The notes under the pieces: model-generated
What the model saw: only the letters and a program-made list of their open reading frames with translations
Told to the model about the DNA's origin: nothing
Databases searched by the model: none
In this document: positions 4,794 to 51,600 of the stretch, piece by piece
How the letters are laid out: each line of letters opens with the position of its first letter
Numbering within the stretch: position 1 is the first letter of the stretch
Assembly: GCA_964199315.1 (NCBI GenBank)
Contig: OZ116706.1
Span: 1,674,001 to 1,738,000 of the forward strand
Source: Orbicella franksi
Taxonomy: Eukaryota
DNA: 64,000 nt
Direction: 5' to 3'
Position numbers and translations under genes: made by a program

Positions 4794-5990
4794 TTAAACT
4801 CGTTGTTCCCATATTTCTTCTTGTTTCTCATCCAGTTCTTCTGGCGGCTCTTCTGCGCGCTTTATGTTACACTTTTGGGTTTCTGTTTCAAGCGTACTTT
4901 CTTCTCCTTTGGAACACGCCGCACAAACGGTCGTGATTCCAATTCTAAAGTCTGCACTCATTGTGAACAAAATGAAAGGGTTTATAACATGTTTGAGATA
5001 ATAAAGAGCCAATGCTACGAGATCTATATATTTAAACGTAGTGTTGATTAATGAAGGATCAGCAAACTCGCGATATAGCATCGTAACTCCTCGTGGAAGG
5101 TGACAGATTTGAAACGCTATGACCAAAACAAGAAGCATCTTCACGAGCTTTTGTTTTCGTTTCACGCGCGCCACGCACGCCACTTGTAAGATTCCCGCGC
5201 ACGAAGCACGCGAGCTAAGCGACCTCTCTGCCTTTCCTGGAGTCAAGCTTTTTCCCGTTTGTTCCGCCACCTCGACAAGTATGTCACTTTTTGCTTTGAG
5301 CGTTTGGATGATACTCACATAAGCATAGCTCTGGATCATGAGCTGGGCCACAATGAAGACGACGACCAAGTAGATCTCGTATACTCTGCGATAAAGATCT
5401 GACCATTCGGGAAAGCAGTATGGTGTATCCTCGAAGAGCTGTACCTTCAGTGGAATAGCTAATGGTAGACCAGCGAAAACATAACAGATCAGCCAAATTC
5501 CCAAGTTAACGTATTTTATCTTCGAAGATGACAGTCGCATCTTGAAAGGTGTGACAGTGGCTCTGTAGCGTTCAAACGCAATGGTCGAATGCGTAATCAC
5601 CGAAACACAAACCATGACATCTTGGAGTGGAAGAATAATTCGGCAGAGAGCTTCTCCAAAGGGCCAGCCTTGTAGGTACAGATCAGCGATTCTCAAAGGT
5701 GCAGCAATAATGGCGACACCCAAATCCGCAGCGGCAATGTTCGCAATCAAGAGACCGCAAGGATTTCTTAGTCGCTTCCACTTCAAAATTGATCCCAGCA
5801 CCGACACGTTCCCGACGAAACCGAAAGCGAAGACCACAGCAAAAAATGCGATGACCATAATTTTGTAGGACAGTGGGTCGAACAGTTCTTCTTGGTTCGC
5901 TTCTTGCTCGCTGCCATTGCGTTCAGGTGTCATGGTTTGATTTGAAATCAAAATATCGCTGCTGAGATTGTTTAAAAGGGAGACTTCCAT
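4794..5990 (-). CDS. Class A (rhodopsin-like) GPCR, neuropeptide-receptor-like, 398 aa (GPCR-1)
   Basis: Intronless ORF with 7 hydrophobic segments; GN1.50, ADL2.50, WPFG in ECL1, C3.25, ERY, W4.50, C in ECL2, CxxP in TM6, NP in TM7. A splice acceptor (ttttttcttgcag) at 6081 marks a 5'UTR intron. Confidence 0.95.
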   Translation of the reverse strand: MEVSLLNNLSSDILISNQTMTPERNGSEQEANQEELFDPLSYKIMVIAFFAVVFAFGFVGNVSVLGSILKWKRLRNPCGLLIANIAAADLGVAIIAAPLRIADLYLQGWPFGEALCRIILPLQDVMVCVSVITHSTIAFERYRATVTPFKMRLSSSKIKYVNLGIWLICYVFAGLPLAIPLKVQLFEDTPYCFPEWSDLYRRVYEIYLVVVFIVAQLMIQSYAYVSIIQTLKAKSDILVEVAEQTGKSLTPGKAERSLSSRASCAGILQVACVARVKRKQKLVKMLLVLVIAFQICHLPRGVTMLYREFADPSLINTTFKYIDLVALALYYLKHVINPFILFTMSADFRIGITTVCAACSKGEESTLETETQKCNIKRAEEPPEELDEKQEEIWEQRV

Positions 5991-10505: not shown

Positions 10506-12945
10506 ACTAGTAACGCTCCCAGTGGCATGCAACCTCATTCCCAGGGTCTCTCATCTTCAGTTTATGATTGATCACTACTGGCTTGCAAACTCGCAAATTA
10601 ACCGATTGAGAGCGTGCGATTTTTACCGCGTCAAACAGAACCGTGATATATCAAAATATACCGTTCACTGAATGGATGAATAACCATAGGTAACACACAA
10701 TTTGATACATTGATTACTTAGCTAGTGGCTTTTGAAAAGTGTGTTGTTTGAATCAGTCTATATTGCTACAACTAACATGCGCTAAGCCGAGAGCTGCAAA
10801 TCGACGACTATTCAATCATGATGTCAGCCAGTTACGTTCAGATTCACGGATTTACAATATTCCATTAACTCGTTTCTTTACTGGAGGATTTTTACCCGTG
10901 CAAAATTACGGCTGGCTGTCTGCGGATTCAGTTTTGCGCACGTTAAATATGGCGAAATGCTAACGTGGTGACGTTTACTTTCAACATCTGATGGGAAGTC
11001 GGTTAACAAATAAGTGCTTGCGTTGCTTTCTGTTATATTTCCTACAAAATCTCCGTAAGATTTTTATCACGCTGGTTTTAGATTATGCAAAACTGCGTCA
11101 AACAAAAGCCTTTTTTTTATCGTTTTTATGACTTTTTTTGCGATTGTTTATTCCGTGCACAATTTCCTGTTGCCCAAACTTTCTGACTCGATAATGGCAC
11201 ACTTGCTGAGATGATAAAATTTCATTCACGATCACAGCATATATGAAATGTACATTTACACACATGACAACGATTTCAAAAAAGCCGATTCTCTTCAACA
11301 TCTTTTCTTAATTTTTAAATTTTATTATCTCGCGTTTCAAGGATTAAACATTATTACAGAGGAACTTTTTAACATTAGACTTCCACAAAGACATATTGTC
11401 TCACTACCATTAAAACTATTTAGTCAAACCCGTAACAAAATCTAAGTCTGTTTTTGACCCAAGCACAAATGTTCGGTTTGCTTCGTAAATATCGCCAAAT
11501 GATATTAATAGACATGTAATACACTGTTGATAAATACTTATTCTGATTTTATGTATATATCGGAACTAAACAATTTACTTATCTGTTTATTTATTTCCGA
11601 AACTTCAACCAAAGAGAGACAAACAACGTAAATTCAATCAGTGTACTTTACCGTAACCGAAAACAAAGGCTTTGGCGGTCACTCTTTGTAACAAGGTTTT
11701 CTAGTTTTGCTTCCAGCGCCGAGCGTATTGTACTTTCAGAACGGATGTGTATATTTCAAACAAACTCATTATTGACACGTAAAGAAAAAATCTTTAATTT
11801 CTTTAGCCTGATAGCGCGGAAGTAAATACTTTTTCAAGGAACTTTTTTAACGCGTAAATGCACGGAATATTCTGTTTATGAATCGTGATGATTTGATAAT
11901 GACTGAATTACGGAATGGATTTTTGACGCCAGAAAATTCGTCTAAATTGGCCAGACTAATCGACAAGTTTCGCTTCCTAACGGTACTAAACGAGAAACAA
12001 GTGGAAGTGTGTCACGAATTCACATTTATTTCAGAGGGTTTTCTGGTCGAGTTTTGGGAAAGTTAGAACAACCCGGAAAGGACTGGAACTAGGAAAACCA
12101 AGCACTCATTTGTCCAGCAACAAAATAGCGCTTTTATGTCTCAAATGTGACTTAATAAATGTTAGACGAGTTTTGTTTCACGAATTCACAGTTACTCGTC
12201 CTGATAGGATTCTCGTTCTCTAGTGTGAATACGGCCAATCTTGTTTTCGAGATGAATTGTCGCTCTGCCTGACATAAAAATTAAGGGCTTCCGGGACTGT
12301 AGCGATAATAGTGGATTAGTCACAGTACGAGCCACTGATAACGTTGTATAATTTTTTAACCTGACAGATTTGAATAAACATTTATTGAAGACTTTCAAGA
12401 CGGCGATAGGTTAATGAGTCTGTTACTTTCGTGCGAGCAAATTGAGGTTCTCCAACGAGATTATCCAGCAAACAATACAACGCTGGAAAAACAAAGGAGG
12501 TCCAACGAAAAAGCTTTTAGGCAAAATAATAACAAAGCTTCAACTGCGTAATTGCTCACCGAGCTATTTATCATCTGTGCGTATGGCTTAATAGAATGAT
12601 TGTTCGGAGTCAAACTCTGCCTGCGTATCATCACCGTATTTCTTCGAAATTTGGCTACTGAAGGTGCCCACAAAATCTTTTGGCCTGATATTAAATTCAA
12701 GATAGTTTATAAGGCGGCGAGAAAAGAAACTTTTCACCGCCATATTCGGAAGTTGGTTATCAGGAAATTGTTCAAGTACGTGGTTAAAATTGAATCAAAA
12801 TTAGGCGCTTTCTTTTCAATCTTTTGTTGATAGGTTGAAGGCAATGTCTTAAATAATATTCTCCTTGCTGGTGAACTGTGACAGTCAGAGGAAAGTTGCA
12901 GCGAGCGGTAACTCTCTCTCTCAGGGCCTGAAATACGAGAGTGCG

Positions 12946-13875
12946 ATGGATACAAATGTGTCTTTGTTCAACAATCGCTCATCGAATGACACATATCAAC
13001 CGGCGACAATCACTACAGTCCTTTTCGCGTTCGTGATAGCGACGGGTTTTCCAGGGAACGTCCTAATTGTGGTCGCGATTATCGCCCGTCAGCGACTCAG
13101 AACTCCTTGTTACTCTCTGGTTCTCAGCATTGCTATAGCGGACCTTGGCATGGCATTGATTGCCGCTCCCCAGCGCATTATAGAGAACTACATCGGCTGG
13201 CCCTTTGGTAAATTCTTGTGCAACTTCCTTGTGTCCATACCGGAGCTTTTTGTCAGCGTGTCTGTCATGACTCACACGGCAATCGCACTGGAAAGATACC
13301 GTGCAATTGTACAGCCGTTCAAGGGACGAATGTGCGTGAAGACAGCAAGAGTGGTTGTTGCCGCCATCTGGTTCGCTTGCTACATCACAGCAGCTTTACC
13401 TCAAGCTATCATGCTCGATCTCGTGCAAGACCCAGATGGAAAATTTTACTGTGTTCCGATGTTCCCCTCGATGGTTGTCCGTCGTGTTTACGAGTTTTAC
13501 CTCGTACTCGTGTTCATCGCCCTTCCGTTAATTTTTCAATCTTGGTGCTATGTTAACGTGTTCGTTTTTGCCAGACGAGAAATGAACCTCTCGAGGAAAA
13601 ACACCGATAATAAGGACGCATTTCAGCGTTGCAAGAAAAAGATTCGATTGGTCTTAGTTTTGGTTTCCCTTGTTGCCGTTTTTCAAATCTGTTCCATTCC
13701 TCGAGGTGTTTTAATGCTCATAAGAGAATTCGAAGGAGATGCCGTAATGTGGACAAACATGTTTTATTTTTATGCGGACGTGATTTCGCTTTTCGCTTAT
13801 TACATAAAGCATATGATAAATCCTGTAATTCTTTGGTCCACGAGTAGTGAGTTCCGATTTTGCTGCGGAAATTAA
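12946..13875 (+). CDS. Class A GPCR, neuropeptide-receptor-like, about 309 aa (GPCR-2)
   Basis: ORF 12865-13875; first ATG at 12946 (MDTNVS, N-glycosylation sequons); 7TM, GN, ADL, WPFG, ERY, FQICSIPRG, YYIKHMINP. Upstream acceptor ttttgttgatag at 12833. Confidence 0.93.
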   Translation: MDTNVSLFNNRSSNDTYQPATITTVLFAFVIATGFPGNVLIVVAIIARQRLRTPCYSLVLSIAIADLGMALIAAPQRIIENYIGWPFGKFLCNFLVSIPELFVSVSVMTHTAIALERYRAIVQPFKGRMCVKTARVVVAAIWFACYITAALPQAIMLDLVQDPDGKFYCVPMFPSMVVRRVYEFYLVLVFIALPLIFQSWCYVNVFVFARREMNLSRKNTDNKDAFQRCKKKIRLVLVLVSLVAVFQICSIPRGVLMLIREFEGDAVMWTNMFYFYADVISLFAYYIKHMINPVILWSTSSEFRFCCGN

Positions 13876-18106: not shown

Positions 18107-19070
18107 TCATTTCAAGCGTTGTCTGAAAACACTGCTACTTGTAAAAATAATCAATGGATTAAGCACATGTTTGATGTAGTAAAGTATTAACGCTACCATG
18201 TCGATGTACATAAAAGCCAAACTCTCTGAAAAATTCCCGAATTCTCTTATCATCATTAATATACCGCGAGGAATATAACAAATTTGAAAAACAACAACAA
18301 GACTGGCGACCAATTCAACGAGACGACTCCTCCGTTTATATCGTACCAAGTCAAAGGATGTGTTCGCGCGATAGCGCTGGCATTCATCCAGAGAAGACCT
18401 CCTGTTGTCGTGGGTAGATCTGAATCTCGATTCAGTGCCGCGAACCCGAAAGCGATGAAAAATATCCACGCTCACCACTCGGCTCATGGAAGCATAAGCC
18501 CAAATCTGGACACTTATCGACAAGACGATGAACACCACAACGAGGTAAATTTTAAAAACGTAACGAAAAGTCGTCGACGGAAAACTAATCACGCAGTAAA
18601 TTTGACCATTCTGTTGTTCTGTCCGAGAAATAACAGCGATGGGCAAGGCTGTGGCAAAATAACAGCTAAACGATGTAACACAAATCACTGCTCTCGTAAT
18701 GGTCACAGAAATCTTGTTCATCATCGGTTTCACTATAGCCCAATACCTTTCCAAAGCTATTGTTGTGTGAGTCACGACGGACACGCACAAAAACATCTTG
18801 CAGAGGAGACAGGAACCTGCACATGAAGTCCCCGAAGGGCCAGTGCCGAGTGGTAGTAAATTTCCAAACTTCGCAGGGGAGCAGCTATAACAGCGACTGC
18901 CAGGTCCGCGATTGCGATATTCATTATCAGTAAATTGCAAGGAGTTCGCATTTATTTCCAGCGGATAATTGTTGCAATAATAATAGAGTTTCCTGTAAAT
19001 CCACAGAGAAATATGAAACTGTACAAAGTTGTTGCAATGATAAAGAATGGATTTTTAACGGGTCACATGT
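18107..19070 (-). pseudogene. Disrupted class A GPCR paralog (GPCR-3 pseudogene)
   Basis: TM1-TM2 (GFTGNS..IRWK*MRTPCNLLIMNIAIADL) has in-frame stops at 19063-19065 and 18952-18954; +1 frameshift near 18846 and -2 frameshift near 18786; TM3-TM7 is open to 18107; W4.50 is lost. Confidence 0.85.
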
Positions 19071-26092: not shown

Positions 26093-27151
26093 ATGCCGGA
26101 GCAAAACTTCAGCGAGATGAAAAACGGATCCTTGACAAACATGAGATCTTCCTACGCTCTGCTAGCACCTCCATTATTTAGTTTGATCATTGTAGTTGGA
26201 TTTGTCGGAAACGCGCTGCTTATTTACACTGTGCTTCGCTGGAAAGATATGAGAACCCCATGCAACTATCTCATCGCCAACAATGCAGTGGCAGATCTTT
26301 GTGTGGTGCTTTTGGCAGCTCCCTTGAGGATCGTGGAAATTTACTACGGATGGCCGCTGGGCAAATTCATTTGCCGTCTTCTTGCACCAACACAGGATGT
26401 TTTTGTTGTGGTGTCTGTTCTAACTTACACGATAATCGCCTGGGAAAGACACAGGGCCGTTATCACACCTTTTAAAGCCAAACTAACTTTAAAGAGCGTA
26501 ACTATCTCTGCTATATTTATGTGGGTAGTTGCCTATCTTGGCACCGGCTTGCCCATTGCCTTATCTCTAGACGTGATAACGATTCAAGGAAAGTCTCTAT
26601 GCTTAGCGTCCTTTGGATCGGACATTTCCCGGCAGATCTACGAATCTTACCTGGTAGCGTTTTTTATAGCACTACCCCTTTTTCTGCAAACGTTTTGCTA
26701 TTCTAGACTCCTTCACCACTTAAGGCGGAAGAACTCCTTCCAGAGGTCGTTTAGAGACTCTACCAGGTCAGACAACCGGGGCAGAAAGAACAAAAGAAGA
26801 CGACTGATTCGGGTGACAATAATTCTCATCATCTTTTTCCAAGTTTGTTACATTCCAAGAGGAGTTATCATGTTACTTTACGAGTTCGCGCGTGGCGTAA
26901 CGACAAATGTGTATTTTAAATATACCAACCTCGTTTTTCTGGCTTTGTATTATGTAAAACATGTTATTAATCCGATCATTTTGTTTACTGTAAGTACGGA
27001 TTTTCGTTCGCGCTTTCCGTGTAGAGTTGCAAATTCCTCGCCCACATTTTCTTCTTTCAAAAAGGTTTTCTCGTATCGAAAATCGTCGCGAAACACTTTG
27101 TGCGGAGGAAGCGAGAATGAGCATATAATTAACAAAGAGACCGTACTGTGA
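26093..27151 (+). CDS. Class A GPCR, neuropeptide-receptor-like, 352 aa (GPCR-4)
   Basis: Intronless 7TM ORF; GN, ADL, WPLG, C3.25, WERH (DRY variant), FQVCYIPRG, YYVKHVINP. Acceptor tttattggcag at about 25940 upstream. Confidence 0.95.
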   Translation: MPEQNFSEMKNGSLTNMRSSYALLAPPLFSLIIVVGFVGNALLIYTVLRWKDMRTPCNYLIANNAVADLCVVLLAAPLRIVEIYYGWPLGKFICRLLAPTQDVFVVVSVLTYTIIAWERHRAVITPFKAKLTLKSVTISAIFMWVVAYLGTGLPIALSLDVITIQGKSLCLASFGSDISRQIYESYLVAFFIALPLFLQTFCYSRLLHHLRRKNSFQRSFRDSTRSDNRGRKNKRRRLIRVTIILIIFFQVCYIPRGVIMLLYEFARGVTTNVYFKYTNLVFLALYYVKHVINPIILFTVSTDFRSRFPCRVANSSPTFSSFKKVFSYRKSSRNTLCGGSENEHIINKETVL

Positions 27152-36551: not shown

Positions 36552-43431
<6,880 letters not shown>

Positions 43432-43931
43432 AACTTCAACGATCGCACCAACGCTAGAAATACTCGTAACACGAACAATATGCTGCTATCACTCGGGAGA
43501 AAACGACGAAATAAAATCTGCTGAGGCCCAAGAAATATTACAAAGTCGCCATGATTGATTCCGTGGCCGACAGAAGACTGGACCAGACCATTTTAGTGTG
43601 TTCTATTTTTGGAACCGGAAATTGCAAGGCATGACGAAATACATGGCACTTTCATGACCACTCCATAAGTGATGCAGAGGCCATCAGAGAATTTCGTCTA
43701 TCGTCTTGTTCTTTTGATAAGCAAAAAGGCTTTATCGGTGGCAATTTTGTCAGTGAACTAAGTCAACCAAGTAAAACCGGGAGGAAGACACTTCGTTGCC
43801 AGGCAAGAAGACGTTCCGCTCTGAATTTTTAACCGCTGGTCAAGACAGAAACTTGCTGACTACGAAGAAACCGGAATATTCTGCTGTCTCACACCTTTTC
43901 ATTTTGTGCAGTTAATTGTATCACAGAAACG
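43432..43931. promoter_or_regulatory. Probable bidirectional promoter, MK2 / ankyrin gene
   Basis: CpG-rich 500 bp between divergent ATGs; ETS-like accggaaat near 43613 and YY1-like cgccatgat near 43547. Confidence 0.5.
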
Positions 43932-43958
43932 ATGAATAACTCCATCGGAAGACGAGTG
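43932..43958 (+). CDS. Putative first coding exon (MNNSIGRRV) of the ankyrin gene
   Basis: ATG followed by a phase-0 GTAAGT donor at 43959, matching the phase-0 acceptor at 48646; intervening exons cannot be excluded. Confidence 0.5.
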
Positions 43959-44591
43959 GTAAGTTTTGAAAGATTCATTATTTTGTATTGTAATTGTAAG
44001 TCAAAACTTCAGGTACCGCGCAGCTTACCGAATTTGTAGGTTTGACTCCATAGGTTCTATTTCTCGATTTGTTATTTCTGGAAGGTTGGTGGTGGTTTGA
44101 TTTTTCAGTTCAATAATGACGTGTCTCTGATCATGACCGGGTTGTACATGTACGTACATGTAATAAATAAATAAATAAATATACATTTACATTTATTTAT
44201 ATACATTTACATTACATGATCATTTTTGTCGTGACCGCAAATGATTACAGGGTTGATCAAGCTCAGAGACCAAGTCAAAATTTCTGTGATCATGTTTAAA
44301 CACGCCTCTTCGATTGCCTGAAATCGCAGTTTACAGAAAATAGAACTATGTTCCAGTGCTTTCAATAAAATGTGGAGCAGATTGCTACCCTGGCACAGTC
44401 TCTGTCAGAGAGCAATAGGAGCGGCTTATAACAGCTTCCTTTTGAGGGTCAGTTCTGGAAACTGCTAACTAAACATATTTACAGATGGCAATTCGCCGGA
44501 ACTTAAACGGGCACCGGGTCCTATTGAAAGCACTCATTCTCCACACCTTATGATCATTTTTAATTTTTTGCTATCATCTGTGATCATATTA

Positions 44592-45004
44592 AGGCCTGTC
44601 CAAACGGGAAATGTTTGGCGACCAAACACCATCAAACATTGTTTGGTGACCAAACATTTTACCATTTGGCCACCTTGTTTGGTGCTGTTTGATCGTGTTT
44701 GATCATGTTTGGTCGTGTTTGATAAAACTTGAAGGCCATCAAACATTCGATCAAACAACTTAAAACATTTCTTTTGTTCTCATGTTTGATGGGCGATGTT
44801 TTGTTCGTTTGGACAGCCGTATCAAACATGTTTGGCGCGTGCATGCGTACCACAGTTGCTCAGCAGCTTGCATCCATAGTTTGATCTGTGTTTGATCAAA
44901 CATGTTTTAACCGTTTGGCCACTCACTTCAACATCAGCATGTTTGGTCACCAAACAATGTTTGATGATGTTTGGTTGCCAAACATTTCCCGTTTGGACAG
45001 GCCT
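44592..45004. mobile_element. PIF/Harbinger-type MITE
   Basis: Approximately 70-bp near-perfect TIRs aggcctgtccaaacgggaaatgtttgg...; TTA target duplication on both sides. Confidence 0.85.
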
Positions 45005-46289
45005 TTAAAGCAGCTCAACAATTGCTACTTGTAAGATGAAAACTTATCACATAAGCTTACATGTATACCATAAATATATAATTGATCAGGTTTCTTGCAT
45101 TCTTCCCTGGCTCATGGATTTTTGAGCAAAAAATAGACTGCTTGTAGTCCATTATAGACCACTCTTTCTATAGGTTTACCGGTGCATTAAACGTATGCAG
45201 GATGTTTGGAGAATATGAGAAAAGCTTGTGATTTTCAAACTTTTTGTGTATCCTTCTAACAAAGAGTGGCCCCAATGAAATAATTATAATAAAGTTTGTC
45301 AAAGAGAGGAAAATGTATTGTACTTTCATGATCAAGTTACTTATTCTCAGATGAGATGAGGCAGCAAACCAATCACAACAGCTGAAAGAATAAATTCAAA
45401 GGCTCAGCTCTAAACAGAAAATCCACAGAAAAAGCAACAAAAGCTTTTAGCCTATCAGTAAGGCTATCAGTAAAAGTACTGAAATGAATGTGTATTAATA
45501 GATTTTAAAATATTTTGACAAGGCAATGCAGGAATTTGTTGCTGGAATCAGTCTTGACTACAATATTATGGTCAGTGTAAAATGAAGACTGCGGACTGTA
45601 CATGTAACCAGGGGGTAAAATGCAGACTTAAGTACTTTAGTAACTGAATTGTATTACCATTTCCATCATTGCAGGGGTTTCAATAAGTTCTGAAGTAGGA
45701 GGTTGCACTTCAGGGGTCGTAAGGTCCCTCCCCCTAGGGGGGTATGAGGGCATGCTCCCCCCAAAAATTTTGGAATCTAGAAGCCTGGAAATGCCATTTC
45801 CTGCATTCTGGTATCAAATCCAGTACTAAATATTGATTAAGTAACAACAGCATTACTGACAACTGTATTTAGTTTTTCAAGTGAAATTCAATTTTAATAT
45901 AAGGATAGCGTAAACCATAGAATACTGAATCTTGGGAATTTTTTCATTACATACAGTATACAGCAATGTGAAGCATTTGCAGATGCACAGCTGAAGTCCA
46001 GACGTATTGCATCAAATGAAACAGGAAAACAATGTTTAGAAAAAATATGAAAGTTTATCTTGCTATGTTGTTGTTGTCTTACTGTCAGTCTATGGTCACA
46101 ACCATTACTGATTTCCACATGTTTCCATGACTTTTAAAAGCTACTAAAAACAGCTTGTTACCTAAAAAAGGTATTTAAACTACTGCAGCATTGGGTAAAT
46201 AAAGGACTTTTAGCCAAGGACATGTTAGCCAGCATGAAGCAATATAACGCTTTGCCAGACTGTTACTACAGAGTATAATGCACACAATG

Positions 46290-47446
46290 TTAGTCATAAT
46301 CGTTGTCCGACTCAAAAGTGCTATCTGAGTCACTGTCTCCACCAACTGGTAGTTTCATCTTTGCTGTAGTAGCATTAACCTCCAGTTGAAGCTGATCTTC
46401 CTCCTTAATCTGAACTACTTTGCTGTCATCAATATTCTCAGGCTCTTCATCTTCAGTTGGAAAAACAATGGTAATAATTTAGTTTACATACCTGTTCATT
46501 CTGTTTCCGGTCTTGATCTTTTATTAAATTATGCTAAAATACTGCCACCTCCCACACGTTTATGGCTTGGTTCCATTGTTGGAGCACATGCAAATGTGAT
46601 CAAGGCGAGAATTGACACCAGTCCCTCTCCCCTGCATTGAGAGCTAACCATAAACAGGCCACCAACTGAAGCATTAGGCAGGCTAACCTGAGTGATATTC
46701 AGTCTAATCAGAATGCAGGCTTTCACTGTGATTTGCCTTAATAACCCATTTTATGGTCAGCACTCAAATAATGGAAATAATATGATGTATACTTAAAACA
46801 TCTGCAGTCTGCATTTTACCCCTGCTCTGCAGTCTGCATTATACCCTCAGTTTGCATTTTATCCCCGTTTTACAATCTGCAGTCTGCAGTCCACAGTGTG
46901 CATTTTACACTGACCACTTGACTATAGTGATGCCTGATGCCTGGAACTTAAACAGACCTACCTACCTAGTACTGTAGACTGGGTTTCTTTTGGTCTTCAA
47001 TGGCACATATCATATGGGAGGGCAGAGTCCACCCCGTACCTATAATACTTGGTAGTGCTGAGTACAGGGGACAATGAGACATGTTTGATGCAATTTTTAG
47101 TGCGTTAAAAAAGTTTAATTTGCTCCAAGGTCTGGACTGACATGGGGTAATGAAATCATGAACATTAGTATTTTGGCATCTTTGTACCAGTTCTTTTCTT
47201 CATATACTTCATAATTATTCATTCAGAACTCTTTCAATGCTCTTTCATAATTCACTGATATTCATTCATAACTCTTTGAATTATTATGTCTTGATGTCGA
47301 GAAATCTGCTCTCTTGGTTTGCCTTGATTTTTCTGTGACATTAGCAAACCATTAAACTCATCAACAAAAGATGAGCTTGAGAAATGGTGCCTAAAAGGGT
47401 GGAGGAGCCATAAGCAATCCACGACATGACAACATCCATGACAACC
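46290..47446 (-). pseudogene. Spliced fossil gene with CpG-decay stops (possible SWIM-finger or transposon-derived protein)
   Basis: Exon A 47446-46966 (phase 0 to 1) and exon B 46736-46492 (phase 1 to 0) join via GT-AG with no frameshift; 12 stops, 9 of them TGA; an open acidic tail follows at 46478-46290. Confidence 0.6.
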
Positions 47447-48404
47447 CTGTGAATTGAACACACACAGTTTTGTGGCCCTTACTCAAATATTAAAATATTT
47501 AGTCTTAGAAAAGTCTATACTTAATATATTTTTTCTTATTTCGTATCAGCATACGTAAATAGCGCTATAAAAGTAATTAAATTACATATAATAATAAGGA
47601 CAAAAATAATAATATTATCGTTATTATTATTATATTATTATTATTTTTATTATTACACTTGTTCCCTGCTAAACTGGACGTTTAGCTCAGATTCCCTCTC
47701 TCCCCCTCCCCCCCCCCGGTTAATGTCCGTTTGGAATATTGCTTAAGCCTCATTATAAAGATACTAATCTTCCTTGTATGTACGTATATGCCGCTTGATT
47801 TAATCTAACTTAAGGTGGCTGAAAACAGTTTCCAGCACTTATCAAGATGTAGATTTTGATGAGTCTTTATAACCACTCTTTATTAGTTGATGCTACAATC
47901 ATAGTATCCAAAAACTGCTAAATCATTAGTGAATACGTTATCATTTTCGTGACACAATAGGTTACCATAGTAATGATATGATCTGATGAGAACACCCTTA
48001 ATTTTAGCGTTCACTGCTCCTAACTCAAAAACGAGCCCGGTACGTCACCCCCACTTTTTAGACCTTTTTGTGGTTTACAACAGTCAGTACTGTATTCTCG
48101 TAGAAATTAAGAATCTGTCTTACCGAGGTTTCTAACAGCTAAAAGTTGCACATGGTCAACACAACATAAGCCATTTAGTTCCTGTCACTTGGTCAAAGCT
48201 TAGTCACTTTATAAACAGGTTTTGAATCCTAAGACATTTTTACAAGAGTATAAATCAATTGACTTCTCTCCACTAATGGACAATACGTACTTTTAAAGAC
48301 TTGTTTTGTTTTTTTCGTAACAACTTGTTCCTGATTCTGCTATTGTTTAATTGATTCTATCGTTTTACGTATTCTCATATTTTATCTTTTACTAGTTGAC
48401 ACTA

Positions 48405-48580
48405 TACAGTTGCGCCCTGCTGTTTCGAACTCTCAGGGGATGCGAAATAGTTCGAAATAGTGGGAGCTCGAAATGGCCGATAGTAAATGAATGAAGGGCA
48501 AATCCAAGGGAAATAGTTTTCTGTTCGAAATAACGAGGAATTCGAAACAACCGAGTTCGAATTAGCGGGGTCCAACAGTA
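48405..48580. mobile_element. Tc1/mariner (pogo-like) MITE
   Basis: TAcagttg ... caacagTA ends with internal ttcgaa repeats. Confidence 0.55.
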
Positions 48581-48646
48581 TTGTTATTGTTGCTAATGAA
48601 CTGTGAGGTTTCGATTAAGTTAAACTGTGTATTTATTATTTTTTAG

Positions 48647-51600
48647 CTGCCCTTGAAAAGTTTGGCCTTTAATTTATTGACTACACCAAACAAAGAAACT
48701 GGTTTAAGCTGCCTACAATCAGCGTGCATTGAAGGAGACGTCGAGACTGTCAGCGCAATCTTAAACTATAGTCCGGACAAACTTGACAGTGCCATAGCTT
48801 TTAGTTTGAAGATTGGACGCAACGCAACCCATTTTGCTGGCAAATCTATTTACACTGTCTTGCGTCAGCAAGATTCTAAAGAGCATAAGCAGATCAGCGG
48901 ATTCGTTGAAAAAGTTACAAAGCATTTCCAGTCCCAATCCCTTCTACATTTGGCCGCAAAGAAGGGTCAGGTCGAGCATCTTCGCAGGTTACTAGAATGT
49001 GGTGAGCATGTTGATTCAATGTCGCCTGACCTCTGTGCGGATAGAGAGACACCCCTGATGTTGGCAGCCGGTTTTAATGAGGTAGACGTTGTTGAGTTTC
49101 TTGTTGAAAAAGGTGCTTCGCTAGAGATGCAAGATGCTGAGGGATGTAGTGCACTACACCATGCTGCGATGAGTGGCAAAATTGGCAATATACTACGCTT
49201 ATTAGAGTTTGGAGCCAATGTTTTAAGAGGAAATTACGACCAAATAACAGCCATTCATATGGCTGCTGAAAAGGGTCACATAGAGGCTGTCCGCCTTCTT
49301 CTAGAGCATGGTGCAGATGCTAAGAAAGCTAACTACTATGGAATGACTCCGCTGATGTCAGCTGCGCAAAAGGGCCACTTACAAATTATCCAGTTGCTGC
49401 TAAAGAATGGTGGAAGTTTAACCCTAGGCGACGAAGAAGGTCGGTTACCTTTACATTTTGCTGCTGAAGAAGACCAAACAGATGTAGTCAAATTTATTCT
49501 TGAAAAAAATGGGAGTGTGTTGACAAAGACTTCTAACGGGGACACAGTCCTCCACTTGGCCACTCGTCTGGAGTTAGTCCAGTATCTTGTTGAGCAAGGA
49601 GCTGACGTTCCTGCAAGGAACTCCTACGGTAGAACACCGTTACATGCCGCTGCCAGCAAGGGTCAATCTAATACAATCGTCTATCTTTTAGATCAAGGTG
49701 CTGATGTGAACGCACGAGACGAATCTGGTTGCTCAGCATTGTTCTTTGCTGTTCATGGACGCTATGCCGATGCCGCTAAGGTTTTGATTGAAAGAGAATG
49801 CGATTTGAAGCTAATAAACAGGGCCGGTCCTTTTCTTAACGAAAATCTGTTCGAAATAGCTGCCGCACAAGGGCTGACGAATATTTTGAGACATCTTATT
49901 GACAAAGGTCTTTCCAAGACCGTTGATGACGTCAACAGATATGGCGAAACGCCTCTGATGCAAGCGGCAAGAGGCGGACATTGTGATACGGTCGCTTTTC
50001 TTTTAGAGCAAGGAGCTAACGTCAATGGGAGCAAAGGCTCAAAAACACATAGTTTAGAAGATAATTGTGTTCATCACAGCCACAGCGACGGAGAAGACAG
50101 TGAGGAAGACGATGAATTTACAAGGTACCACTTTGGAAGCCAAGAAATCTCTCCCTTGTATTACGCCTTGGAAGCGGGTCATACTGAAGTGGCTAAACTC
50201 CTAATAGAACGAGGAGCTGATACTTCGAACTCGGAAAGTGAAGACAACCCTCTTGCAGAGCTTGCAGCTAGGCATTGTTCCCTTGATATTCTTCAACTGC
50301 TTCCCGATCAGAAAAACGTCAATTTAGACAATTTGGAGAATGGCGAAACTTTGTTGACCTCAGCAACTTACCGTGAGGACTTCGACTCCATTCCAGCTCT
50401 TTTAGAGAAGGGTGTGGATATAAATGCAAGGAATAGGTCAGGCGACACAGCTCTTTCCTGTCTTCTCCAGTTCGCACCACGCCCTCGTGCAATGGAACTC
50501 GCCAAGCTCCTTATTTCATATGGTGCTGATATCGATATGAGGAACGACCGAGGTGAAACTCCTCTTCAAATAGCGTGTTCCACAAACTTCGACAAAGTAG
50601 CTGAGCTTCTTCTTGAACTGGGTTGTGAACCGAACGTTAAGAATGATTATTCTTATTCTCCTCTTCACCATGCTGCACAAAACAACAATGGAAAACTTGT
50701 TGAGATGTTACTTCAGTGCGGTGCTGATATCAAGATTAAAACTAAAGACGAGCAGACACCCTTGCATATAGCTGCAAATTCAGATGGGCTCCACGCAGCC
50801 CAAGTGCTTTTGGAACACGGTGCTGAGTTGGAAGCCATGGACTCGTCAGGTCATACACCTCTTGCTGCGGCAGCAGCTTGTGCTAACTTGCGTATGGTCC
50901 AACTGTTGATGAAACATGGAAGCAGTGTTCATGGGAAGGACAATTCGGGAAAGACTCCTCTGTTACTTGCTGTAGAACGTTTGCGCTATGGGGACCAAGA
51001 GACGGATAAAATCACCCTTATCAAGACATTGTTGGATCATGGAAGCCTTGTGAACGCCATTGATGAGTTTGGCAGGTCTCCTCTTCATTATGTTTATCAT
51101 GCCCCAAGGGAATGCTGTGATCTCCTCTTACAATATGGAGGTGATGTCAATTTACCAGACATGAACAAAGAGACGCCTTTGCATTTTGTAGCAATGGATG
51201 GAGACACAAGCTGCATCGAGTGGCTTCTTCAGCAAGGTGCCAACGTGGAGGCCTCGGACAAGGAAAGTCGTACCCCTCTCCACGCAGCCGCATACGGGGG
51301 CAACAACAGTTCTCTTGAGTTGCTGATTCAACATGGTGCCGATGTTCAGTTAGCTGACAAAATGGGCTGGCTTCCTCTGCACTTTGCTGCTTCCGGAGGA
51401 CATTTTGGTGCTGCCGAAGTTTTGTTCCAACATGGAAGTGATCTTGGAGCTGGTGACGACAAAGGGAGGACTGTCCTTTATCTGGCAGTTAAAAGCGGTT
51501 GCCGAGAGCTGATTGAATTTCTTATCAACCATGGGAGTGACGTTAACACAAAAGATCTAAGTGGACGTACAATTCTTGAAGCAATAGATGATTGTAATTT

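Follow-up and report, generated by a model that had tools for sequence, protein, structure and literature searches.

The window (the whole 64,000-nucleotide stretch of Orbicella franksi DNA that was analysed) contains an ankyrin-repeat gene on the plus strand, and the sequence under study, positions 46290-47446, lies inside its first intron. The gene opens with a short exon that carries an ATG at 43932, and its second exon is in the frame of an ankyrin-repeat open reading frame (ORF) of 1296 codons with a start at 48653. The extent of the intron is read from the sequence of both ends and from RNA: the splice joint (43957 to 48646, cut +1) is supported by two independent sets of RNA contigs, X1 and X5, and by 11 raw X23 polyA reads. 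An earlier, first-pass annotation of this DNA had placed its reading antisense within an ankyrin intron, and in this respect it was correct.

A minus-strand gene, which by eye from its sequence we take to be MAPKAPK-like, has its first coding exon at about 43210-43431 and a further exon at 40474-40677, and its start near 43431 is divergent from that of the ankyrin gene. The region between the two genes, 43000-44000, is a divergent promoter region; its CpG observed/expected ratio (o/e) is 1.09, and it is flanked by two CpG-poor gene bodies (0.22-0.38 at 39-43 kb and about 0.2 at 45-47.5 kb). Further upstream of the MAPKAPK-like gene there are four clustered intronless ORFs on both strands (4794-5990, 12865-13875, 18107-18940 and 26093-27151), presumably rhodopsin-type GPCRs, again named by eye. 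Within the intron, 44479-45069 is a repeat with an internal 10/20-bp periodicity (TGTTTGATCG) and overlapping open frames on both strands, and the RNA contig sets are deep there. The features of the locus are as follows, in window coordinates.

43932-43958, plus strand: ankyrin exon 1, from the ATG to the exon end
43959-48646, plus strand: ankyrin intron 1, phase 0, GT..AG
from 48647, plus strand: ankyrin exon 2
47342-47455, minus strand: R1, the final ~115 bp (3' end) of an unclassified interspersed repeat of ~395 bp
46917-47341, no strand: unique intron sequence, 425 bp
46635-46915 (or 46916), minus strand: left part of R2, a MITE-like element with terminal inverted repeat (TIR) GGTCAGTGTAAAA and GGGTAAAATGCAGACTGCAG subrepeats
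45672-46634, minus strand: hAT transposon relic, 963 bp, truncated and internally deleted, inside R2
46467-46634, minus strand: S1, a segment internal to the relic
46293-46458, minus strand: last ~56 codons of the hAT transposase ORF, still open, with its stop (TAA) at 46290-46292
45672-46289, minus strand: 3' non-coding part of the relic, ending in GAAACCCCTG
45570-45671, minus strand: right part of R2, with the second terminal inverted repeat

Reading the minus strand through its stops, the first-pass annotation had proposed a three-part gene, once spliced and inactivated mainly through CGA-to-TGA deamination, made of a part A (47446-46967), a part B (46737-46519) and an open acidic tail (46478-46293). 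The letters had been read accurately: all the quoted peptide strings are present in the translation, the 12 stops in 233 codons are indeed nine TGA, two TAA and one TAG, and the tail is open for 62 codons (46293-46478) before its TAA. The claimed continuity of frame holds only if an intron is assumed, as A, B and the tail use three different minus-strand frames and the reading changes frame twice. It had also been said that the total number of stops is not below random, which is borne out by a density of 0.0515 per codon against a background of 0.061; of the 3550 contiguous readings of 242 codons in 45000-47500, 1203 have no more than 12 stops. Other frames of the same DNA have longer open stretches (77 aa at 46969-47199 and 73 aa at 46532-46750), and the intron holds 15 open stretches of 62 codons against 10.0 +/- 2.8 expected under a first-order Markov model. 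An open stretch of 62 codons is unremarkable in this intron.

Several of these parts are members of repeats in the own genome. The beginning of A, including the string GCHGCCHVVDCLWLLHPFRHHFSSSSFVDEFN, comes from R1, and a translated own-genome search with the first open piece of A found at least 45 places that match residues 10-52, most of them with an in-frame TAG. At the DNA level R1 is 74-81% identical to L020-L024, and the copies have in common a 395-bp unit in which they are 82-89% alike. A CxH motif in A had been likened to the second half of a SWIM finger, a likeness that dissolves once the family is considered: the motif sits in R1, the family reads G-C-H-G-Y-P-x-C-S-V-stop in that frame, and its other copies have GCHGYP.C and a TAG there. 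The second "CCH" of the window copy stems from a local duplication of GTTGTCATG, no SWIM CxCxnCxH motif occurs in a coding frame and the Pfam search was blank at E up to 10. The SWIM resemblance is thus accidental and falls within a non-coding repeat. The remainder of A, which separates the R1 fragment from R2 by 425 bp (R1 lying further upstream on the minus strand), matches only itself in own-genome DNA and protein searches, has no match to related contigs, shows no coding signal and carries seven stops in the frame of the earlier reading.

What had been taken for the intron, together with the first ~34 codons of exon B, is the left part of R2. This element has at least 90 own-genome matches at 72-81% identity, nine of whose copies were aligned, and inverted arms at 45547-45598 and 46887-46938. 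When 45672-46634 is removed in silico, R2 aligns unbroken across the junction in three paralogous copies (L002, L005 and L006), and 45672-46634 is therefore a discrete insertion into R2. In these respects R2, which is called MITE-like by structure and copy number, resembles the MITE-like nonautonomous elements that carry nested insertions: its length is about 390 bp, it has terminal inverted repeats and a high copy number, a second element lies within it, and its paralogs display the uninterrupted empty site. A tRNA scan of the R1 and R2 loci found no tRNA and no tRNA-like head. Elsewhere in the genome, about a dozen R2 copies lie ~10-15 kb apart on the chromosome that also carries the window, at G000:C9:12.46-12.64 Mb (L003, L004, L007-L010), each with adjoining inverted partial copies, in what looks like a tandemly duplicated repeat-bearing unit.

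The inserted 963 bp have termini CAGGGG...CCCCTG and are flanked by a 5-bp direct duplication (CATTG on the plus strand). Elements of the hAT superfamily usually have an 8-bp target-site duplication; here, judged against the uninterrupted R2 copies, only the 5-bp duplication is found. The inverted ends amount to the 6 bp CAGGGG/CCCCTG, or 12 nt at 92% with the flanks counted in, and other copies show no matching terminus. Co-linear copies, each with deletions of its own, exist at C3:14.33 Mb and on L046 and L047, and L029 is co-linear as well. The 3' non-coding part is 83-84% identical to L047 and L046 and 84% to the C3 copy, and three copies stop at the same 3' point (...GAAACCCCTG, window position 45672/3). 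A subterminal segment, 45706-45818, is found again at other genomic sites, ~340 nt downstream from long transposase ORFs (e.g., C1:12647585/12647921). Relative to L029, the window copy has lost 234 nt (L029 168-401), which encode RSTLRGD...VQVEIS. At the other side, the L047, C3 and L046 copies extend beyond the 5' end of the window copy by about 190 nt, and a CAGGGG 5' end was sought in these three and not found; the window copy is either a shorter unit that was mobilised as such or a truncation that leaves R2 seemingly cleanly interrupted. Two other origins for the copies were considered and set aside: the C3:14.33 Mb copy as a segmental duplication of the ankyrin locus (within 40 kb, only the element is common to the two) and L047 as the orthologous locus (no synteny beyond the element).

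The final ~39 codons of exon B come from S1, a segment of the same insertion. S1 is common to L029, L046, L047 and the C3 copy at 73-92% identity, and in the own genome the C3 copy alone matches. Profile search, tblastn and tblastx found no match of S1 to the transposase profile or to the long transposase ORFs, and the idea, formed by eye, that it might be the "SNAWPERG..." part of the dimerisation region gained no support from these searches.

With these pieces in place, the proposed gene loses its unity. Exon B spans the junction between the hAT relic and R2 and cannot be one ancestral exon, and the A-B-tail reading as a whole draws on at least four unrelated sources (the R1 fragment, unique intron DNA, the MITE-like R2 and the hAT relic inserted into R2) that were put together by nested insertion. 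As the exons proposed, A and B have no homolog in Pfam or in own-genome DNA and protein searches. The seven open pieces gave no Pfam match at E up to 10, and an Rfam search of 43900-48700 returned only two sub-threshold chance matches, to sn2991 and to a CRISPR repeat. The proposed junction of A and B does have GT and AG dinucleotides, as a spliced gene would require, but no RNA joint uses them and there is no polyA coverage. The nested-repeat anatomy already contradicts a model in which one gene was spliced across these parts; what was called a "hidden spliced fossil gene" is a reading pieced together over unrelated stretches of mobile DNA in the ankyrin intron.

The tail is the one part with a coding ancestry. 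A full HMMER scan (phmmer) of its 62 residues against 1.84 billion proteins returned four relatives at E-values of 1e-5 to 8e-18, namely P0002 (77% identity, 67 aa), P0003 (130 aa; 74% identity over its C-terminal 58 residues), P0004 (69%) and P0005 (73%). The matches are to the C-terminal ends of predicted peptides from coral metagenome contigs, at 69-77% identity. A further match, P0001 (2406 aa, 27 short stretches), was set aside as a low-complexity acidic match, and an ESM Atlas search was uninformative (best score 0.78, low recognition). The own genome has many matches to the N-terminal part of P0003 (RSTLRGDMLEALMQTLINGP...), and several lie within long ORFs of 615-917 aa that contain DUF4371, zf-C17orf113 and Dimer_Tnp_hAT (27.2 bits in L033, cut-off 21.4). 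These own-genome transposases likewise have an acidic C-terminal tail, in which the motif ...DSD..SAFESDxD(Y/F) recurs, and a profile of their C-termini retrieves P0003 at E 1e-21. The profile does not detect the window tail directly, and the link runs via P0003, L044 and L047. On L044, a coral metagenome scaffold of 10 kb, a nearly full-length transposase frame ends with the P0002 tail (...LSLPVSNAWPERG...DDMLEALMQ...EISETEDEEPENIYD...SAFESDNDYD), and the tail closes a transposase frame on L047 as well. The window itself aligns to L044 over 46458-46137 only, at 78%.

These observations show that the acidic tail is a genuine coding fossil, homologous to the extreme C-terminus of hAT-superfamily transposases. 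The guess of a transposon-encoded sequence is correct, in this form, for the tail. The dimerisation domain PF05699 is found in relatives (at 27.2 bits in L033, as above, and as a weak match in the gene that immediately precedes the tail on L044 and on L045); in the window there is no Pfam match to it, and the ~234 nt that encode it in L029 are absent. The window thus contains a relic derived from a hAT transposase gene and not a domain-bearing member, and the gene was destroyed here by truncation and internal deletion, not by stop codons. Set beside hAT transposons with DUF4371 and a C-terminal dimerisation region (PF14291, PF05699), the relic, whose ends read CAGGGG/CCCCTG, is alike in the homology of its tail and in a 3' subterminal sequence that is found beyond long transposase ORFs. 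It is unlike them in that the catalytic and dimerisation regions are gone and ~56 codons are left, the duplication is of 5 and not 8 bp, the inverted ends are very short and S1 is absent from the long ORFs.

Could the tail, too, be a chance pattern, so that AT-rich intron DNA without any coding ancestry accounts for everything? The stop density and the ORF-length statistics are those of such DNA, and the blank Pfam result for all pieces and the low atlas score are what it would give. Chance does not readily yield matches at the E-values given above among 1.8 billion proteins, however, nor a tail that coincides with the C-terminus of a transposase frame on both L044 and L047, nor co-linear DNA homology that continues through the 3' flank. 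The tail homology already contradicts this explanation, which we consider extremely improbable.

A different question is whether the tail is alive, either as the terminal exon of an antisense gene that is not annotated or as an exapted transposase fragment. Its 62 open codons, the pyrimidine-rich run and AG that precede it and the fact that related tails were called as small ORFs in several metagenome assemblies would all fit an exon. In the RNA evidence, which comes from one read query and from raw-read runs that bear another organism code than the best DNA matches, the raw polyA depth is nevertheless zero over 46055-46448 where neighbouring exons have 6-25, and the AG before the tail takes part in no RNA joint. 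The RNA contigs cover 44978-47587 in a single unspliced stretch whose depth is even; pre-mRNA or DNA carry-over would look like this. Conservation of the tail does not exceed that of its surroundings (84-88% identity to related copies, against 81-90% for the non-coding 3' flank), chance alone predicts open stretches of this length, and ~234 nt of the coding sequence upstream of it are deleted. A living exon is therefore very unlikely, and the tail would be open by chance and evolving neutrally. We also considered the tail as the terminal exon of a gene on the minus strand, one whose body would explain the CpG-poor block described below; this was rejected, since the block lies in a plus-strand intron and such a gene has neither coverage nor a joint. 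The conservation of the tail, the polyA depth and the splice joints gave no evidence of function.

There remains the composition of the stops, from which the idea of a gene erased by CpG deamination had come. The segment 46290-47446 is indeed CpG-poor, with o/e values of 0.22 for CpG, 1.44 for TpG and 1.37 for CpA (whole window: 0.93, 1.10 and 1.10). The depletion forms one block of 2.4 kb, 45070-47455, with sharp edges inside the intron; within it every component has a CpG o/e of 0.09-0.29, repeat and unique sequence alike, and 47456-48646 and the promoter region 43000-43958 have about 0.9-1.2. CpG depletion is thus regional and extends over the whole intron block. RNA-contig depth is very high within the CpG-normal flanks, at 47631-48024, 48419-48615 and 44479-45069, and these stretches are probably younger, abundant repeats that have yet to lose their CpGs.

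Nine TGA among 12 stops corresponds to a nominal binomial p of 0.014-0.031 on local composition, in a test that was chosen post hoc, and the bias is not particular to the proposed reading: frame +0 has 12 TGA among 18 stops and frame -1 has 16 among 29. An excess of TpG lifts TGA in any frame, so the TGA excess requires no coding history. The four TGA codons in B can be compared with nine paralogous R2 copies or with copies of the hAT relic. Two are TGA in 9/9 R2 copies, and the third is TGG in most of them, TAG in three and CGG in one. The fourth (46600-46602) reads CGA in two copies, L046 and L047, and TGA in the other two (L029 and the C3 copy); it is a real CpG-to-TpG site, in a segment without a demonstrable coding frame. 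Three of the four testable TGAs were accordingly never CGA, being ancestrally TGA or TGG. The real ORFs of the 64-kb window use CGA for 0.84% of their codons, which predicts about two per 233 codons and not nine, a number that would be about 5 times the real-ORF usage. CpG decay is thus real in this DNA, as had been claimed, but it is regional, and a loss of Arg codons from CGA to TGA does not explain the stops. For the three-part spliced host or orphan gene, the nine TGAs of 12, the CpG-poor surroundings and the CGA of two related copies at 46600-46602 have to be set against the ancestral states of the other three codons, a background-level stop density and the origin of A, "intron", B and tail in different repeats; we regard it as almost certainly wrong.

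The decay can also be followed between copies. In four pairwise comparisons, summed and with overlapping sites, 28 positions have CG in the related copy and TG or CA in the window copy, and four positions show the reverse. The window copy has 3-6 CpGs where other copies have 11-17. In Cnidaria, CpG depletion with TpG gain serves as the accepted proxy for germline methylation (PMC8857923). The pattern here is like that of cnidarian gene-body CpG methylation and decay in that a block low in CpG and high in TpG and CpA lies inside a transcribed gene, with the divergent promoter (43-44 kb) retaining a CpG o/e of about 1.1. It is unlike it in the sharp intron-internal edges of the depletion at 45070 and 47455, and methylation is here read from composition. 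We infer that germline methylation may have caused the loss of CpGs in 45070-47455. The block coincides with an old nested transposon cluster in a part of the intron that is otherwise CpG-normal. That methylation was aimed at old transposon insertions in this coral is unlikely; ordinary gene-body methylation, with the block flanked on each side by younger insertions that have not decayed, would be the alternative. Exaptation of the tail as an antisense micro-exon is less likely still than such targeted methylation.

Taken together, the evidence points, with a probability of about 0.9, to 46290-47446 being non-coding DNA of ankyrin intron 1 that consists of nested mobile-element insertions and in which the tail is the sole piece of coding ancestry. 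Under this reading, the ~390-bp MITE-like R2 would have landed in the ankyrin intron, a nonautonomous element of the hAT superfamily would then have inserted into R2, and the hAT element would later have lost about 234 nt that encode the end of the dimerisation region. The block 45070-47455 has lost CpGs to TpG and CpA, as expected for a germline-methylated cnidarian gene body, and this loss raises TGA among the stops in several frames and so gave rise to the pattern that the earlier reader noticed.

The locus is ordinary genome debris: nested transposon relics in CpG decay. It carries a caution for invertebrate introns that are depleted in CpG and rich in TpG, where an excess of TGA and a plausible GT/AG pair can make stacked repeats mimic a "fossil gene". 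The hAT relic in a MITE in intron 1 of an ankyrin gene also provides an example that is dated by nesting, and the loss of CpG to TpG and CpA relative to its sister copies could serve to calibrate CpG decay in coral gene bodies. More complete relatives were encountered elsewhere in the own genome. Apparently intact hAT-type ORFs of 887-917 aa with DUF4371 and zf-C17orf113 lie at G000:C1:12645500-12653500 (L042) and G000:C10:8043500-8051500 (L043), and three near-identical 615-aa copies, 8.2 kb apart, lie at C10:2.526-2.543 Mb; all of these may be recently active or domesticated. The transposase ORF of L042 adjoins a rhodopsin-type GPCR ORF.
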